Origin: Adineta vaga
Lineage: Eukaryota; Animalia; Rotifera
DNA length: 64,000 nucleotides
Assembly (NCBI GenBank): GCA_021613535.1
Contig: CP075492.1
Coordinates: 8,494,001 to 8,558,000, forward strand
Direction: 5' to 3'
A program made the translations under genes and the position numbers. The notes beneath the pieces were generated by a model that had not been told where the DNA came from, did no database searches, and was given only the letters and a program-made list of their open reading frames with translations. Of the stretch, positions 19,652 through 28,833 are shown piece by piece (position 1 is the stretch's first letter; each line of letters begins with the position of its first letter).

Positions 19652-21499
19652 TCATGTCCATATTGTATATAATTTCCAAACATCAATTGTATCAATGACG
19701 ATACTGTCATCATCATTCGGCGCTTCATTAACATATACTGCTAAATTATCAGCGTTTTCTTCTTCGGGATAAACATGGCCCGTTAATGCAAATCGACCAC
19801 CTTGTGGTTCAAATATTTCAATAACGGAATGATCAATAAAAATATCTAATTGAAGAAACCAATGAGTATTGGCATTTGTTGATTCCATCCATATTGGTGC
19901 ATGAAGTATATTATGTGCAGCATCTGGATTCTTCTGTGATAAAATTCTGTTCATATAAATCCAAATAATTTGTTTATCGTCGTGCCGTTGTTTTACACCA
20001 GATATACAAACAGAATTTGATGTAAGAAATGGAATGCCAGATTTAAGAAAACAATTATTATTTATTTGTCGATCTTTAACAAATGTCCATGCTTGACATT
20101 TTGGATCTTTATTACAAGCAATTTGACAGCTAGACCAGTCAATTATACTTGGAACACTAAAATAATCCCATCCAGACAAATCCCAATTGAACATAACACT
20201 CGTATTATCTCTTGAAGTAATACCAATACTTGTTTGTTGACTACCATTCGATGTTGATAAAACAATTAGACCAAAATCTAAATTCTAAATATATGGGAAC
20301 GAAATAGTATACTAACGAAAGAAGAAAATATGATCACTAACTTGGTGCATTGGAAACTGCCAATTGATAAGTATTTCAATTTGATTACCATGTGTATTTG
20401 GTATTAATTCAAATGGAATATATGATGGTAAAACTACACTATGAAAAGATTCATGACTTTGCTCATCACGTAAAGTTTTCAATGCATCAATTGGACGTGA
20501 ACGTAATTCAGATCCATCATCCGATAGAAATATTGTTCGTGGAAGTGTATGACAACCTTGCCAACCACGTTTTGGACCTAAATTATCTTCTTCAGATGTC
20601 CAACCCATGATTATTTGTTGATCATTTACTGGATCATAGAATGTTTTCGATGCATAGAATCTTCCATGATCAATCAATTGAATAAATTCACCAAGATCAT
20701 GATTATCTGGTATGAAAATTAATTTAATTGGATCAATATCACCAAGTGTCCAAAAATCTCGACCAAGTAATGATGCTTTCAAAACAATTCGATTAGTAAC
20801 TGCAAATATATCTGGACATTCCCAAAAACTATCATAATGATTACTATGAAATGGATGTAAATATGTCCATTTAAGAAAGTCTTTCGACGTAAATAAAACA
20901 GCTTGTCCACCTAAATCTTCTGTACCATAACCGTATATTAAATAATAGTTTTGTTCATCATCTTGAAAAGCTGTTGACGGATCACGACCATTCGGAGTTG
21001 TAATTAAAGGATTTAACAATGATTTTTTCCAATTTGTTAATGTTGGATCAGACATATCAACTGGTTGAGCTTGACATTGAACTTGTGCACTTGTATTTGT
21101 TATTCCTGTATAAATTATTGTTGGAATGCCATTGACTATAGTTGTACTACCACTAAAGATTCCATTGATATCATATGGCTGATCAGGTGCTAGAGCAACA
21201 GGTAAATGAATCCAATGGACCATATCTTTACTATAACAATGACCCTATATGAAAGAGAACGATAGTAAGAAAGGCTAATTAGATTCATCTAACCGTACCC
21301 AATGCATGTCACCCCATACTGCAGCATTTGGATTATATTGAAAGAACATGTGATAGTAACCATTAAAATATACAGGTCCATTGGGATCATTAAGCCAATT
21401 TTTAGCTGGCATCATATGATATTGAGGACGTAATGGATCATCAGCTTGAACGACCTCGAATATCGTAATTAAAGACACGAAGAAAAGTATTGTTTGCAT
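19652..21499 (-). CDS. Secreted glycoside hydrolase family 32 (beta-fructofuranosidase/invertase) with inserted PAN/apple module
   Basis: Signal peptide, WLNDPNG (nucleophile), [21 protein letters not shown] (acid/base) and DHSVIEIF. Two introns. Insert of pattern [16 protein letters not shown]...CFLKSG. Confidence 0.93.
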
Positions 21500-22168: not shown

Positions 22169-23064
22169 ATGAATTCGAATTGGGATATTAAAACTAGCTA
22201 TAAACCTGCACTATGGCGATCAACAGTTACTGCACCATTATGTGCACTTTGTAATAAAACGGTCTATCCAGCTGAAGAATTGACTGCTGCTGGTCAAAAA
22301 TTTCATAAACTTTGTCTTAAATGTAGTAAGATTGAAGAATTTTTTTCTACTGTTCAAACCTTGACAACGTTTTACTTTTCTGTTTAGCGACTTGTAATAC
22401 ATTACTTAATTCTGGTAATCTCAATGAACATGAAAAGAAAACTTACTGTGTACCATGTCATCGTCGTCAATTTGGTCCTCAAGGAGGTAAATACTATTTA
22501 TATTTGGAAACTAAAGGTAGAAAAAACTATTTTTTAGTTGGCCGTGGTCTAGCATCTACCTCATCATTCAATGCTGATATGTTATCGACGAGTCCACGTT
22601 CGAATACAATAGAAATGAATCTTGAAAATCATCGTTATCAACGAAAAATATCGACAGGATCATCACCATCTCGTACATCATCGGATGATGATTCACGTCA
22701 TATCAGTGGTGTAGGATTTAAAATGATGAGTATTTCACAAAATATCTGTCCACGTTGTTCCAAAACTGTCTATTCTGCTGAAGAAGTCAAAGCTGCTGGA
22801 AAAGTAAGTCAATTACATTCTTTTTTCATTTCGTTTTCGTTCAGAATCACATTCGTCAAGTATATTTTAGTCATTTCATAAGCGATGTTATAGTTGTGCA
22901 CATTGTAAAGGAAGTATCAGTGGTGGTCGATACAGTGAACATGATGGCGAACTGTACGATAATAGTAAGAATGATAAAAGTATTGATTTTGCAAGTCACC
23001 ATGTGAATATATTTGTTTAGATTGTTATCAACGTTTATTTGGACCTGAAGGTAGATGTTTATAG
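22169..23064 (+). CDS. Cysteine-rich/muscle LIM protein (two LIM domains), paralog A
   Basis: [27 protein letters not shown] and [34 protein letters not shown] follows each LIM. Four introns. Confidence 0.88.
22725..22975 (+). repeat. Left arm of a 251-bp perfect inverted repeat (partner 27906-28156)
   Basis: Base-by-base comparison shows 22725-22975 is the exact reverse complement of 27906-28156, including one whole intron. Near-identity continues to about 23050/27830. Confidence 0.95.
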
Positions 23065-23315
23065 TATAGATGAAAACCGGTGCTTTGAAAAGAAAACGAA
23101 TGCTCTTCAGTCTCATGAATTTATTTTGCTCGTTTAGTTTCTATTAGTTTTCTTTAATTATCGAAATATTTATCTTGATTTAGTTTTTGTTGTTTCTATG
23201 AAATCTGTAAGTGTATAGATAGATATATATATATATAAATAAATGAATTTAATTATGAAAGAATATTTTCAAAGCTAAATTATATACATAGTTTGTATTT
23301 ACAAGCAATATTGAT

Positions 23316-24556
23316 TTACTCATCGTTCATAATTTTTAGATTTTTAAATGCTTGTGTAAGATATCGACAATCTTGTATTGCTGCTGGCGGTGAATGACTA
23401 TCCGTATTATTGAAATAAAAGAAGAGTTGAAGAGAACTATCATTTGTATTTGAAAGAAAGTGTTTGCTTGTATTTGCAGCTAATTGTTGCATACGATTTT
23501 CTCCATAAACACCAGTATATTGACCGATTGAACCGTGAAAACCTATTCACTCATTGAATGATGATATACGGTTTCGTGACAATGATAAACTTACGATAAT
23601 AGACACCCCAATCACACGTTTTGTGGTCGTCAATATCTGCTGGAAGAGTTCCAGACGGCATATTACCGCACCAATTTTTCGAATTTTCACAAGTAATAAT
23701 GCATAAACACCAACTGGAATGAAGGAGACAATTTGAATAAAAGTCAAAAGTCAATTTAATTTACTTGTATTTTTTCATTAAATGATAGACTTCATCACAA
23801 AACCAAGATTTATCTCGAAATTCGAAAGCAAATCTCGCATCTTTTGGTAATATTTTTGCTAAATCATCAAGACGAGTTAAAGTTGTTTGTGTATTTTTAA
23901 ATCCTGGTGGAAATTGAAAAAGAACAGGTCCAAGATGAGACTTTAATAATTGACATTTTTTCCAAAATGTCTAGAAAAATAAAAGATATTCATATATCTG
24001 AACACAAACATTACCTTACTTCCCATCGTTCAATCCATACTTCGTCAATATTTAATTTTTTCATATGTGTAAAAAACCTAAAAACATAAATCAATCATGA
24101 CACTGTTCGAACACAATTCTCCTACTTATTGGCTTTAATGGTATATAGAAACGATGGTCGAGGAGCTTTCTTCGTCCAATTTTTAAAAGCCGAATCCTGT
24201 GGAATATTATAGAAAGTCGAATTTATTTCAACAGTATCGAATTCCTATGTTTAACCGTAATGTTTAATTCATTTTACATTGGATATATACATACACTACA
24301 ATAATAGTCAAATTCATTTTTATCCGGATAATAGTTCTGATTTGTTGGACCCATATGCCAACTGAATGAAAGAAAAATATGAGAATACATATAATTTTCA
24401 ATCTTTCTCATACCGTTTATAAGAATAACCACTCGTACCACATCGAACAGGACAGTTAATTGCAAATAGTTTCGATCGTTTATTATCCATCAGAATTTCA
24501 AAAGCATTTCTTCTTATATTCGTTTTTGTATGCTTTGAACTGTTCGGTGAGATCAT
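23316..24556 (-). CDS. DUF72 (YecE/UPF0759-like) protein, six introns, only fragments visible in the ORF track
   Basis: Manual splicing gives RCGTSGYSYKRW...YYP...EFDTVEINSTFYNIP..W...F.YTIKA.KFFTH.KKL...LGPVLFQFPPGF...FAFEFRDKSW...YYRFHG...FFYFNN. These are the DUF72 motifs in order, and all six junctions are GT-AG and in frame. Confidence 0.88.
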
Positions 24557-24829
24557 TTTTCAAATTGGATTAAAATGATTTATTCGAAACGGCATAGAAG
24601 ACGAACAAACATTTTTCTTTCGATGTTATAGATGATATTTGATAGAATAGAAAAAGAAAGAAAGTATGTGCACACTATAGTCAACATTCTAGAAAACGTG
24701 ACGACATCTTAGTCATGCATTCTTTCATGAAATACATGTACGAAATTATCATTCGTATAATATTTAAATTCTAAAGCATTCAACTGTTGGATATAAAATA
24801 GATAATATGTCTTATGTTTCATTGATCGA

Positions 24830-25529
24830 CAATATCTACTTTATTTATTTGAAATAAGTTAAAATACAATACAATGAAAAGAGAAAAACAAAATGCACTA
24901 TTCTCCTTCAGACTAATTATGATCATCCAATATATTCCATAGACCAAACTGATATGCAATTATTAGAGTCATATATCCTATATGTAAATGAAAAAAATAT
25001 CGCTACATTCCACTGTTCTCAACTGATCGATACTCTTCTTAAAAAACAACAAGAATAATACTCCCTTTTCTTATACCGATTTGAATTGAAAACGTGTGCT
25101 TTCGGAACACCCGGATTTTGCCAATCGGTTGATGATACATATCTTCGAAACTCGACTTCCTTACCACTATGACGACAATGTTGAAGATACACCGATAAAA
25201 TTGACTATTTTGTTGTGCATTCTAATAGTATCATCACAAACAAATAGAATTTCAGGTTCGGTGGCCTTCAACATGTCCGATCGACCCTAGGCGTCGGTGT
25301 TAAACGACGAAAGCAGAGTTTTAGATGATCGAACACACTGGAAGCCGGGTTTTTACTCAGGCGTAAAAAGTCCGAGCGACTACGAAGTATGCTTTAGCAA
25401 CAATGCGATTGCAAAATTTGGGTGCAAAGACAGCACCCGTTTCCAATCCGTCATCGGTATAGGTTATTAGCCACCGGGAGTGTGTTGTTGAGACACGACG
25501 CGCGGTTGATGATCAGATGTGGAAGATGT
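24830..25529 (-). ncRNA. Candidate structured Pol II noncoding RNA, copy 1 (family unrecognised)
   Basis: TATATAAA at 25560-25553, 31 nt upstream of a putative start at 25529. GC-enriched core with several hairpins whose G-U pairs mostly favour the - strand. AATAAA near 24845. No long ORF. Near-identical to copy 2. Confidence 0.55.
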
Positions 25530-25552
25530 AAAAATACATGAGAAAACGTGTC

Positions 25553-25560
25553 TTTATATA
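25553..25560 (-). promoter_or_regulatory. TATA box of candidate ncRNA copy 1
   Basis: TATATAAA on the - strand, conserved with its context in both copies. Confidence 0.55.
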
Positions 25561-26429
25561 GTCGACGTTGTTATTACACAACGAACAGTCAATGGAGAAT
25601 ATTCCAGAAAAGAGGAAAGAACGAAAAAACAAAATTACAAAGAAAACGTGTATAGTGGTGTAAGTTATTTTGTTTTGTTTCACATATCTAGGCAATACGT
25701 GCAAAATTGAGCTAGTAGAATGCAATCAGGTTGTTACGTAGGTAAGAGACCGATACATACAAAATAAAAATAAAAAATGAGAGTGTTGCAAGCGTATTGT
25801 GAAACAAAAGTAAAAAATAATCAAGACGCAATAGCAAAAGTCTGTTGTTTCCGTCAGTGATTCTATGGAACTTCAAAATATGTCTGTAAGGCCTGACGAT
25901 GCGATGCTGTTTGATTGAGTTGTTTTTGTTTATTCAGAAAAATGTAGGAGGTAACAATTTTACGTCTATCATTTTTGTTATGAATACTACGAGAAGAAAA
26001 CGAAATTTGAATAGATTTTAGATAAACATTGCTTCCAAAGTAAAAGTAAGAATATTTAAGAATCAATGCTTGTTCAAAGCCATCGTCTGTTAGTATATTC
26101 TAACGCTGATTTTATTAGCTCATTTCTTTAGCATTAACTACGTGTACTATCGAGCAAATGTTTGTAGTGAACGATGTATAAAGAAAAAGACATTAAGATA
26201 GAACAGATGGTAGTATTCTGCGTTAACTATGATAAAAAGATTTTGTCATGACGATGCGAGATAAAACTTTGCAAATGTTTTATTTTTCAGTGTTTATATT
26301 TGGATTTTGCTCAAAAGATCCATTGAAAACTATCTAGACAAAACAGCAATGACGCATTCAGCGAACAAACTATGAGATGAATAAAATAAATATTTGTTAT
26401 CTTTAACCGATGATTTGTAGATTTATTGA

Positions 26430-27157
26430 CATAGTTTAATGTTTTATTTATATATGACAGTTTAAAAAACAATACAATGAAATAAAAAATACAACTCTTT
26501 CTATTTCTATGCTAATTCACCTGTTTCAGAGACCAACCATCATCATGCAGCATATTCCATAGACCAAACTGATATATGATTGCTAAAACCAACATTTACG
26601 TATATAATAAAACGTTTCATGTCTAAATATTCTCGATGATATTGTAAAACGAACTAAAATAAATACCCACCTTTGTAGTAAACTCACTCTGGTAACCAAA
26701 TTGTACCATCGATGTGAATTGAAAGCGATTACTATCAGAAAAATCCGAACTTGACAATATGGTTGATGATGCATATCTTCGAAACTCGACTTCCTTACCA
26801 CTATGACGACAATGTTGAAGATACACCGATAAAATTGACTATTTTGTTGTGCATTCTAATAGTATCATCACAAACAAATAGAATTTCAGGTTCGGTGGCC
26901 TTCAACATGTCCGATCGACCCTAGGCGTCGGTGTTAAACGACGAAAGCAGAGTTTTAGATGATCGAACACACTGGAAGCCGGGTTTTTACTCAGACGTAA
27001 AAAGTCCGAGCGACTACGAAGTATTCTTAGCAAGCATAAGCAGGTTTTATTTTAACGATAGCAAACGTTTCCAATCCGTCATCGGTGTAGGTTATTAGCC
27101 ACCGAGCGTGTGTTGTTGAGACACGACGTGCGGTTGATGATCAGATGTGGAAGATGT
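26430..27157 (-). ncRNA. Candidate structured Pol II noncoding RNA, copy 2
   Basis: TATATAAA at 27188-27181, putative start 27157, same structured core as copy 1, AATAAA at 26448-26443. Confidence 0.55.
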
Positions 27158-27180
27158 AAAAATACATGAGAAAACGTGTC

Positions 27181-27188
27181 TTTATATA
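27181..27188 (-). promoter_or_regulatory. TATA box of candidate ncRNA copy 2
   Basis: TATATAAA on the - strand with the same spacing as copy 1. Confidence 0.55.
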
Positions 27189-27783
27189 GTCGACGTTGTT
27201 ATTACACAACGAACAGTCAATAGAAGAAAAAAGAAAAGAGAACGACAAAAAAGAATTACAAAGGAAGCATGTATGGTGGTGTAACTCGCTGTGTTTTGTT
27301 TCATATATCTACATGATAAATAAGGTATTCAGTTAGTCATATGTAATCAAGCTGACGCGTAGGTAGAAGAATCACGAAAAACGAAAGCAATGGAAATATT
27401 ATATGATAAAGAGATGACGTAGGACTTAAGAACAAAAAAGATTTCAAGATGTTTTGCTTTTTTCTTAAATTTGTGTTCGATAAGAACGAAATAATCTTTC
27501 TAGAGTATTTTCATGACAACAGTGGTTCACTTTCTTCCTACAATCAGAGAACTTATAATATATTTTCACTCACGTGTTCAAACATTTATCAACACGTTAT
27601 TTATATTCAATCGTTCGATCAAAACAAATGCATTATATAGATAACGGTTGTTCATGATAGTAAAATGTTAAATCGAATAGAAAATAAACAATAACAAACA
27701 AAAGTAGCTAAAGAGAAAAACGATAAGAGATAATAATCGTCTATGCATTCTAGCACGAATTTTTCGAGAAAATATCGATGATT

Positions 27784-28833
27784 TCATTTCCCTGTTGATA
27801 ATGCTCCGGCACCCATACCAAATCCTACACCTTTAGGTCCAAATAAACGTTGATAACAATCTAAACAAATATATTCACTTAGAGACTTGCAAAATCAATA
27901 TTTTCATCATTCTTACTATTATCGTACAGTTCGCCATCATGTTCACTGTATCGACCACCACTGATACTTCCTTTACAATGTGCACAACTATAACATCGCT
28001 TATGAAATGACTAAAATATACTTGACGAATGTGATTCTGAACGAAAACGAAATGAAAAAAGAATGTAATTGACTTACTTTTCCAGCAGCTTTGACTTCTT
28101 CAGCAGAATAGACAGTTTTGGAACAACGTGGACAGATATTTTGTGAAATACTCATCGTTTTAAATGCTGCACCACTAGTTACACTTGCTGATGTTGGTCG
28201 ATTGATAGTTGACGGTTTTTGTCGTGCTACTACCCCACTAACAAATGGCATACTAGTAGTACGACGTGAATCATCATCAGATGAAATACGCGATGGTGAA
28301 GAACTGACTGAATTTTCGTGAGTGAAACTATTTTGATCACTATTTGCTAGTTCATTGATTGAATCATTTTCTTCACTATTTGCATTGGGACTATTCGGTG
28401 GTGTTTCTAAATCAGTTGGTAATGCTGTAGCCAAACCCCGACCAACTAAACATAATTCATTTATTTAGCTTTCAGTTTACAAACAAATCAAAGCATTATG
28501 TACCTCCTCGTGGACCAAATTGACGACGATAACATGGTACACAATAAATCTTCTTTTCACGTTCATTTAAATTACCAGTATTAAGTAATGTATTGCAAGA
28601 AGCTAAAATGCAAGACACGAGAGAATATTCGATGAAAGAAACGAAAAAAATGATATCTTACTGCATTTAAGACAAAGTTTATGAAATTTCTGTCCAGCAG
28701 CATTGACTTCTTCAGCAGGATACACGGTTTTGTTACAAAATGCACATAATGGCGCTGTGTAGGATACTCGCCAAAGTGCAGGTTTATTGCCAGGTTTATC
28801 ATCTGATTGAATGTTGCTTCTGTACGATGTCAT
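27784..28833 (-). CDS. Cysteine-rich/muscle LIM protein (two LIM domains), paralog B
   Basis: [21 protein letters not shown] and a second LIM identical to paralog A. Ends in the canonical CRP Gly-rich tail [19 protein letters not shown]. Confidence 0.9.
27906..28156 (-). repeat. Right arm of the 251-bp perfect inverted repeat (partner 22725-22975)
   Basis: Exact reverse complement of 22725-22975. Confidence 0.95.

Follow-up and report, generated by a model that had tools for sequence, protein, structure and literature searches.

The 64,000-nucleotide stretch of the Adineta vaga genome analysed here (contig CP075492.1 of assembly GCA_021613535.1, positions 8,494,001 to 8,558,000 of the forward strand; hereafter the window, with positions counted from its first letter) contains two nearly identical blocks of about 465 nucleotides (nt), and the question that this locus raises is what such a pair encodes. 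A reading of the letters alone (the sequence-only reading) had proposed an unnamed tandem pair of structured, TATA-driven non-coding RNA genes of the RNA polymerase II (Pol II) type on the minus strand. Our analysis supports this overall proposal, although some of its details turned out to be wrong: the pair consists of real, expressed and strongly structured non-coding RNA genes, which found a new family in bdelloid rotifers. Furthermore, we consider it fairly probable that each copy is an independent gene for an RNA of ~440 nt according to a model that, taken as a whole, comprises transcription by Pol II, induction by stress and a function as a scaffold.

Results

Two transcribed copies without coding capacity

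Within the window the direct repeats 25106-25394/26740-27028 (96% identity) and 25426-25596/27054-27224 (95% identity) recur with a period of ~1630 bp and correspond to the tandem blocks that had been noticed; the patch between the two repeats does not align, and the flanks are 70-85% alike. The claimed near-identity outside this single patch is borne out, copies A and B being 98% identical across 343 columns outside it vs 43% inside. As had also been seen, the blocks are richer in guanine and cytosine than their surroundings (fractions of 0.41-0.46 vs 0.24-0.33) and lack a long open reading frame (ORF), the maximum being 72 codons.

Both copies are transcribed. Contigs of four public runs were aligned to 24300-27900, and in run X1, which is RNA, the 52-nt intron 24362-24413 (plus-strand ends CT..AC), which belongs to the small gene lying downstream of copy A, is spliced out and thereby confirmed, an exon-exon junction of a LIM gene is present at 27860, and the intergenic stretches are uncovered. 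Contigs of this run lie on copy A at 25041-25360 and 25331-25467, on copy B at 26965-27095, including its private patch, and on the tail of copy B at 26511-26755. Run X8, from a relative, provided a contig 92% identical to A. vaga across 25163-25353, the neighbouring coding exon being 82% identical; six of its nine listed differences fall within the terminal loop of the rod hairpin described below.

In the complete genome (100.8 Mb in six contigs) BLAST and our covariance model matched copies A and B alone, and this copy number excludes a transposon or long-terminal-repeat identity. A transposon remnant or a small protein-coding gene, to which we assign practically no probability, could be imagined on account of the near-identity of the two copies, of a 35-codon ORF located in the rod and of a plus-strand frame that is open except for one stop. 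However, there are only two copies in a single syntenic place, in either candidate frame the differences of the relative in run X8 are spread evenly over the three codon positions, and a 1-nt insertion in the homologue L036 puts the 35-codon ORF out of frame. The plus-strand ORF has no homologue in the protein collection, and the core alignment shows many 1-nt insertions and deletions. This candidate was discarded, being contradicted by the copy number, the evenness over codon positions and the frameshift.

A covariance search of the region against Rfam gave no match except a sub-threshold one to mir-7 (26 bits vs a cut-off of 51.8), which lies on the plus, untranscribed strand and does not contain the seed. 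The models of signal recognition particle (SRP) RNA, RNase P, MRP, U1, U2, U3, U5 and U6 did not match at the locus, and canonical genes for all of them were located elsewhere in the genome, among them two SRP RNA genes of 220 and 207 bits. Neither tRNA-like elements nor bacterial-type signals were found, and in our literature search no description of a rotifer RNA of this kind was found. Between the copies, the spacer shows at 26224-26295 (+) a weak SNORD47-like match (26 bits vs a cut-off of 50), probably by chance.

Homologues in other bdelloids

Homologues were searched for by synteny, through the neighbour genes, and by a pattern scan of metagenomes. The synteny query was an exon of a glycoside hydrolase family 32 (GH32) gene situated 4 kb away, which matched many bdelloid-type proteins from metagenomes and genomes; the contigs encoding these proteins were then examined. 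Syntenic homologues were found in L030 and L036 (two tandem copies each), L041, L031, L043, L050 and L039, the last being a partial copy that matches L036, and in all seven the place and the orientation are identical. An exact 21-mer pattern had no match in the metagenomes; a degenerate 30-mer derived from the alignment retrieved five metagenome contigs, namely L121, L123 and L120/L122/L124. Outside A. vaga the homologues thus represent about eight further bdelloid lineages. No RNA copy was present on the neighbour-gene contigs L040, L042, L044, L045-L047 (Rotaria) and L048/L049.

The contig L120 carries none of the neighbour genes of the window and keeps the TGTGCAAT motif, the TATA box and the tail blocks. 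A receptor gene adjoining its RNA shows 73% identity with Rotaria vs 69% with A. vaga, which would place this lineage at about the same distance from Adineta and Rotaria. Therefore, the RNA gene exists in another genomic context of a distant lineage.

This bears on the possibility of a cis-acting leader or upstream regulatory transcript, to which we give a very low probability. In most lineages the RNA gene is located directly upstream, and in the same orientation, of a small gene (~23900-24556 in the window) that probably belongs to the DUF72 family, judging from synteny with ORFs matching PF01904, and splice-donor-like motifs follow the structured part. However, in L120, L122 and L124 the RNA stands in another neighbourhood without the DUF72-type gene, its own conserved AAUAAA precedes that gene, and where the RNA gene is in tandem, what comes after the upstream copy is the second RNA copy and not the DUF72-type gene. 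Moreover, the RNA contigs contain no splice joint from the RNA to the gene, even though the gene's own 52-nt intron is seen in them. We thus maintain that each copy is an independent gene.

Regarding the neighbourhood itself, inverted multi-exon LIM/CRP-like genes flank the RNA pair at 22169-23116 (+) and 27786-28833 (-); they share one 348-nt arm pair that is 97% complementary, and their remaining exons are 77-85% alike. Most relatives show this flanking layout, among them L048, where the RNA is absent. In the GH32 gene (19652-21223, -) a PAN domain separates the N-terminal part from the C-terminal part. Since this gene is widespread among bdelloid-type contigs and its next-best named matches are from plants, the family looks horizontally acquired.

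A core fold supported by covariation

The core fold was obtained with RNAalifold on 12 sequences. Out of 105 predicted pairs, 19 show compensatory double changes, compared with 10.0 +/- 2.1 in shuffled alignments (0 of 500 shuffles reach 19), and 95.4% of the core cells are paired; with the partners shifted by 1-3 columns the figure falls to 33-41%. An earlier alignment of 10 sequences had given the same picture of the core. The fold is formed by a branched 5' hairpin (H1), a closing helix (H2), a small hairpin (H3) and a second closing helix (H4), beyond which a three-way junction bears a nested hairpin (H5-H7) and a rod (H8). H2 pairs ACUUCG with CGAAG, and is prolonged by covarying CAU/AUG or CGU/ACG. 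A covariance model covering H5-H8 (162 positions) scores 177 bits on the minus strand vs 27-28 bits on the plus strand, which settles the minus strand as had been assigned.

The rod and the nested hairpin folded by hand in the sequence-only reading are both recovered, now with covariation. Other elements of that fold did not survive: the UUUUUAC/GUAAAAA helix is replaced by a conserved CUCGRAC/GYYUGAG hairpin, the CCGAU/AUUGG and CGGUG/YACCG helices fall outside the consensus, the 5'-3' closure AUCUUC/GAAGAU gives way to the ACUUCG/CGAAG pairing together with a long patch-to-tail stem, and the 3' copy of GGTTGATGAT, said to bracket the core, is not conserved in relatives.

The shape of the rod, with arms of ~36 nt and a variable terminal loop that holds six of the nine differences of the relative, would suit a primary transcript whose hairpins yield microRNAs or small interfering RNAs, as would the TATA promoter, the polyadenylation signal and the weak mir-7 match. 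Such a transcript is highly unlikely. A microRNA precursor keeps its seed arm invariant and confines variation to the loop or the other arm; here, instead, the rod arms vary by compensatory pairs, would-be seed bases included (CACAAC, CACGAC and CGCAGC variants), and the long-range helices that join all the hairpins into one fold also co-vary. The mir-7 match, as stated above, has neither the seed nor the right strand.

The variable patch as half of a terminal stem

The patch shows 43-78% identity between the two copies of one genome, against 95-98.5% for the remaining core. Three stretches of it are complementary to the tail that follows H2. The 5' part of the patch pairs with a conserved tail block ~35 nt past H2, the 3' part with the tail block adjoining H2, and the hypervariable middle with the spacer between these two tail blocks. 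The outer helix so formed pairs CGUGUGCUCUC with GAGAGCACAUG in L036 and GCGUAUUUUGUC with GACAAAAUACGU in L120. Analysis of the two alignable helices (alignment A5) indicates 90% of cells paired vs 33-53% when slid, 8 of 19 pairs with compensatory changes vs 3.2 +/- 1.3 in shuffles (0 of 500 reach 8), and a covariation score of 0.305 vs 0.147.

Energies of the duplexes point in the same direction. The patch of copy A binds its own tail with -36.7 kcal/mol vs -18.5 kcal/mol for the tail of copy B, and over all the patch-tail duplexes the cognate mean is -34.2 vs -22.2 kcal/mol for non-cognate combinations, with 0 of 20000 permutations as low. Extension of the A. vaga RNA through the tail lowers the z-score of the fold from -3.96 to -5.41, the minimum free energy of copy A being -137.6 kcal/mol; the corresponding values for copy B are -120.1 kcal/mol and -3.39. 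A hairpin within the patch alone was considered and dropped, the patch-to-tail stem having far more pairs and more covariation.

In the predicted fold, then, the variable patch is not a loop but one half of a long, irregular and co-evolving stem with the 3' tail that closes the core, and the meaning previously given to it was mistaken. With this stem the RNA would span ~25529-25091 in copy A and ~27157-26724 in copy B, longer than proposed; the former 3' boundaries, 25127 and 26761, were ~36 nt too short, and the new ones are predicted minimum extents, the RNA reaching at least 25091 and 26724. The case carries a warning for the delimitation of RNA genes: what looks like a variable patch can be one strand of a co-evolving stem, with its partner strand beyond the edge of the conserved block.

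A fast-evolving arm that co-varies is among the likenesses to the telomerase RNAs of fungi and vertebrates, together with the size, the Pol II-type promoter, the three-way junction and a donor-like site; in addition, we found no paper on a rotifer telomerase RNA. An identity as the bdelloid telomerase RNA is nevertheless extremely improbable. Contig 4 begins with (CCCACA)n, and therefore the G strand of the telomere is TGTGGG. In none of the 12 homologues do the conserved unpaired regions contain a permutation of CCCACA of more than 6-7 nt, and partial matches to the telomere repeat are seen only inside paired, variable positions. A 9-nt direct repeat at the 5' end of the RNA predicts a (GGAAGATGT)n array, which does not exist in the genome, and the sequences adjoining an interstitial telomere tract do not match the RNA. 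This candidate was rejected, having failed the template test. As a separate observation, the locus L125 (G000 C3:1951690-1951750) contains an interstitial pair of telomere-type tracts in inverted orientation, GGGTGTGGGTGTG and CCACACCCACACCC, with TCAAGATGGTG after the second, and may be a retroelement end joined to telomere repeats.

Promoter

Upstream of the structured RNA we find a promoter of three elements (Table 1). As had been noted, TATATAAA is located 31 nt ahead of ACATCTTCC in both copies. An octamer motif is present in every lineage, as TGTGTAAT in A. vaga and L030 and as TGTGCAAT in most relatives. Furthermore, 10 of 13 homologues carry TTCnnGAAnnTTC at a distance of 49 nt upstream of the TATA box; this is a perfect three-unit heat-shock element and the sole such site within the window. 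It has the form expected for genes controlled by heat-shock factor, in which three or more alternating nGAAn units precede the TATA box. Four-unit heat-shock elements number 55 genome-wide vs 12 for a control pattern, and such elements are therefore under selection in A. vaga. The new RNA is thus probably stress-inducible, as far as the motif allows us to judge.

In order to assign the polymerase, the promoters of known A. vaga genes are informative. The U1, U5 and U3 genes have TCTACTGTGCAATTTTTGC with TGTGCAAT 18 nt before a TATA box starting at -32; the U6, MRP and RNase P genes have ATTCACCGTT and a TATA box, with U6 and MRP terminating in runs of at least 8 T; and the U2 gene has a third upstream motif and no TATA box. 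The octamer and the position of the TATA box in the present genes match those of the U1/U5/U3 class, the spacing being 12 nt vs 18 nt and the flanks of the element being different. The Pol III-type motif ATTCACCGTT is absent upstream of the structured RNA genes, no T run following the RNA is conserved among the homologues, and an internal T5 is conserved. Transcription by Pol II rather than Pol III, as had been argued, is therefore likely. A loose TGTGYAAT-TATA pattern was no commoner in the genome than its control, with a pattern spacing that left out the present locus itself.

These comparisons brought to light other loci. Three U1-like genes, L054, L055 and L056 (G000 C2:2628065, C6:4233946 and C5:14662872), start with ATACTTACTTTC in place of ATACTTACCTG and use a ATTCACCGTT-like upstream motif, otherwise seen with U6, MRP and RNase P, and not the motif of normal U1 genes. 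At L067 and L070 (G000 C1:91014 and C1:395496, -) a Pol III-type promoter with ATTCACCGTT and a TATA box precedes several hundred bases that contain internal GGATTT-rich repeats and lack an early T run. L082 (G000 C5:1777803, +) has a ATTCACCGTTTTGTTTTG and TATA promoter with several GATC-containing stretches downstream and could be a small RNA gene.

The promoter also bears on a diverged rotifer 7SK RNA, the scaffold that holds HEXIM and P-TEFb. This identity was formally considered on the grounds that genes for both HEXIM (38.5 bits) and a Bin3/MePCE domain (104.9 bits) are present, yet no 7SK gene is seen in the genome, the Rfam 7SK model having no match anywhere. The size of Drosophila 7SK is close to that of the present RNA, and a conserved helix of the latter pairs GAUC with GAUC. 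We nonetheless regard it as very unlikely. GAUC is self-complementary, so that among ~100 pairs a GAUC/GAUC helix is expected somewhere by chance, and the helix in question has a central position in the RNA, at ~200 nt counted from the 5' end, and is outside the 5' hairpin, which pairs GAUCAU with AUGA-C instead. The structural and promoter hallmarks of 7SK, including a paired GAUC in the distal 5' hairpin (the HEXIM site), a short 3' terminal hairpin and a conserved U run (PMC10083321), are all missing here: the 3' end lies within the long-range stem, and the upstream motif of the U6, MRP and RNase P genes is, as stated, absent. In addition, 7SK covariance models had no match in the region up to an E value of 10. 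A hunt for 7SK among other genes with a Pol III-type promoter gave four unknown loci, none of them convincing. We accordingly keep to an RNA of a new family.

Tail

Downstream of the terminal stem the relatives share a tail formed by a U-rich stretch, a donor-like site and a T-rich block. The strong splice-donor-like sequence, GGUGAGUA or GUAAGUA, is found ~20 nt past the U-rich stretch in L036, L123, L041, L030_b, L043 and L120. The T-rich block carries ATTGTATTGTA and AAUAAAUAAA, and L120 keeps the layout of these three tail features; in A. vaga the last of them agrees with the AAUAAA that had been placed about 700 nt downstream and is found at ~680 nt (24839-24850). Since no splice acceptor is conserved in the tail and the RNA contigs show no splice joint at the donor-like site, we infer that this site may be a U1-binding signal for 3'-end formation or retention.

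Table 1. Positions, within the window, of the two RNA genes and their elements
Feature	Position	Strand	Remarks
Structured RNA, copy A	25091..25529	-	~439 nt; start placed by TATA spacing, end at last pair of terminal stem
Structured RNA, copy B	26724..27157	-	~434 nt; patch 27027-27069; 3' strand of terminal stem ending at 26724
H1, 5' branched hairpin, copy A	25442..25523	-	helices 1-3, 92-94% of cells paired; 4 compensatory pairs in inner stem
Closed core domain, copy A	25137..25392	-	H2-H8; 91-100% of cells paired per helix
H2, copy A	25383-25392 with 25137-25147	-	compensatory pairs
H3 hairpin, copy A	25356-25377	-	compensatory pairs
H4, copy A	25342-25350 with 25150-25158	-	compensatory pairs
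Nested hairpin H5-H7, copy A	25273-25336	-	compensatory pairs in H7
Rod H8, copy A	25180-25272	-	compensatory pairs
Variable patch (5' strand of terminal stem), copy A	25393..25441	-	pairs with 25091-25131
3' strand of terminal stem (Block 1, spacer, Block 2), copy A	25091..25131	-	6 of 13 pairs of outer helix compensatory
Three-unit heat-shock element TTCnnGAAnnTTC, copy A	25597..25609	-	49 nt upstream of TATA box
TGTGTAAT motif, copy A	25573..25580	-	12 nt ahead of TATA box; TGTGCAAT in most relatives
TATA box TATATAAA, copy A	25553..25560	-	in every homologue; 31 nt ahead of ACATC
TATA box TATATAAA, copy B	27181..27188	-	TGTGTAAT motif at 27201-27208
5'-splice-site-like (U1-binding-type) GGUGGGUA, tail of copy B	26664..26671	-	counterpart in copy A, 25057-25067, degenerate
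Polyadenylation-type signal AAUAAAUAAA, copy A	24839..24850	-	aligned in Av_A, Av_B, L030, L036, L041 and L043, after ATTGTATTGTA
AAUAAA signal, copy B	26443..26448	-	downstream

Discussion

Four outcomes had been named beforehand as speaking against the sequence-only reading: lack of transcription, lack of homologues or covariation, identity with a transposon or an Rfam family, and a small protein gene. Instead, RNA contigs cover both copies, homologues exist in many bdelloid lineages with significant covariation, neither an Rfam family nor a transposon-like copy number is found, and the 35-codon ORF is frameshifted in relatives whose core shows many 1-nt insertions and deletions.

In the present study we propose the following course of events for this gene. 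Pol II would start ~31 nt past the TATA box, and heat or other proteotoxic stress would raise transcription through heat-shock factor. The primary transcript would reach the conserved AAUAAA ~300 nt further and would then be trimmed back or otherwise processed, with the terminal stem shielding the mature 3' end; the conserved U1-type site of the tail may affect 3'-end formation or nuclear retention. The mature RNA would act in trans and probably works as a scaffold of a protein complex. More specifically, and more tentatively, it might be the RNA subunit of a formerly unknown ribonucleoprotein, bdelloid-specific and switched by stress, and not a diverged universal RNA; for this last proposal we would hold the chances to be slightly less than even.

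Several observations weigh against the model. The heat-shock element is missing from copy B, owing to a short deletion, and from L120 and L031, and stress induction is deduced from this sequence motif alone. The relation to promoters of the small nuclear RNA type is a resemblance only, given the 12-nt vs 18-nt spacing. The patch-to-tail stem of copy B is weak (-17.6 kcal/mol), and thus copy B may be in decay; A. vaga itself has degenerate versions of the U1-type site and of the first tail block, and in one bdelloid lineage (L048/L049) the RNA is absent from the syntenic locus. Strand, ends and level are not given by the contigs, and the scaffold role is the default guess for RNAs of this kind.

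The large animal RNAs that are conserved pair by pair are few (ribosomal RNAs, SRP RNA, RNase P, MRP, telomerase RNA, 7SK and the spliceosomal RNAs), and additions to them are rarely found. In the RNA presented here ~120 base pairs are supported, its gene has a conserved promoter of its own, and divergent lineages of bdelloids possess homologues. If the RNA is indeed the subunit of such a ribonucleoprotein, animals that survive desiccation and radiation would possess a large, compact RNA machine or scaffold under heat-shock control. The textbook heat-shock element in the promoter connects a structured RNA directly, and in a testable manner, with the stress response of animals studied for their extreme tolerance. 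Furthermore, the covariance model and the promoter grammar of this family can be used for annotating non-coding RNAs of rotifers.

The comparison with named systems shows partial likenesses. Telomerase RNAs of fungi and vertebrates also have a few hundred nt, a Pol II gene of their own, a long enclosing helix, an arm that evolves fast and is preserved solely in its base pairing, and a three-way junction, and fission-yeast TER1 has a splice-donor-like site soon after its structured part; unlike them, the present RNA has no template for TGTGGG, and no Sm site, H/ACA box or pseudoknot was identified in it. With 7SK it shares the character of an animal nuclear-type structured RNA, a similar size and a paired GAUC helix, but its promoter is not of the genome's Pol III type and it lacks a terminal U run and a 3' terminal hairpin. 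SRP (7SL) RNA has overall the same topology, with a 5' domain, a long helix between the 5' and 3' strands and two terminal hairpins, but its motifs do not occur in the present RNA.

The U1, U5 and U3 genes of A. vaga are alike in the upstream TGTGCAAT (or TATGCAAT), in the TATA box ~31-32 nt before the start and in forming small multi-copy sets. In contrast, the present RNA has two to four times their length and no sequence relation to them, the spacing is 12 nt instead of 18 nt, and its gene adds a heat-shock element and a downstream polyadenylation-type signal. Finally, among stress-induced non-coding RNAs, hsr-omega of Drosophila likewise comes from a Pol II gene whose promoter includes a heat-shock element and a TATA box. 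RNAs of the hsr-omega type are long and poorly structured, their conservation residing mostly in the organisation of the gene, whereas the RNA described here is compact and conserved base pair by base pair.

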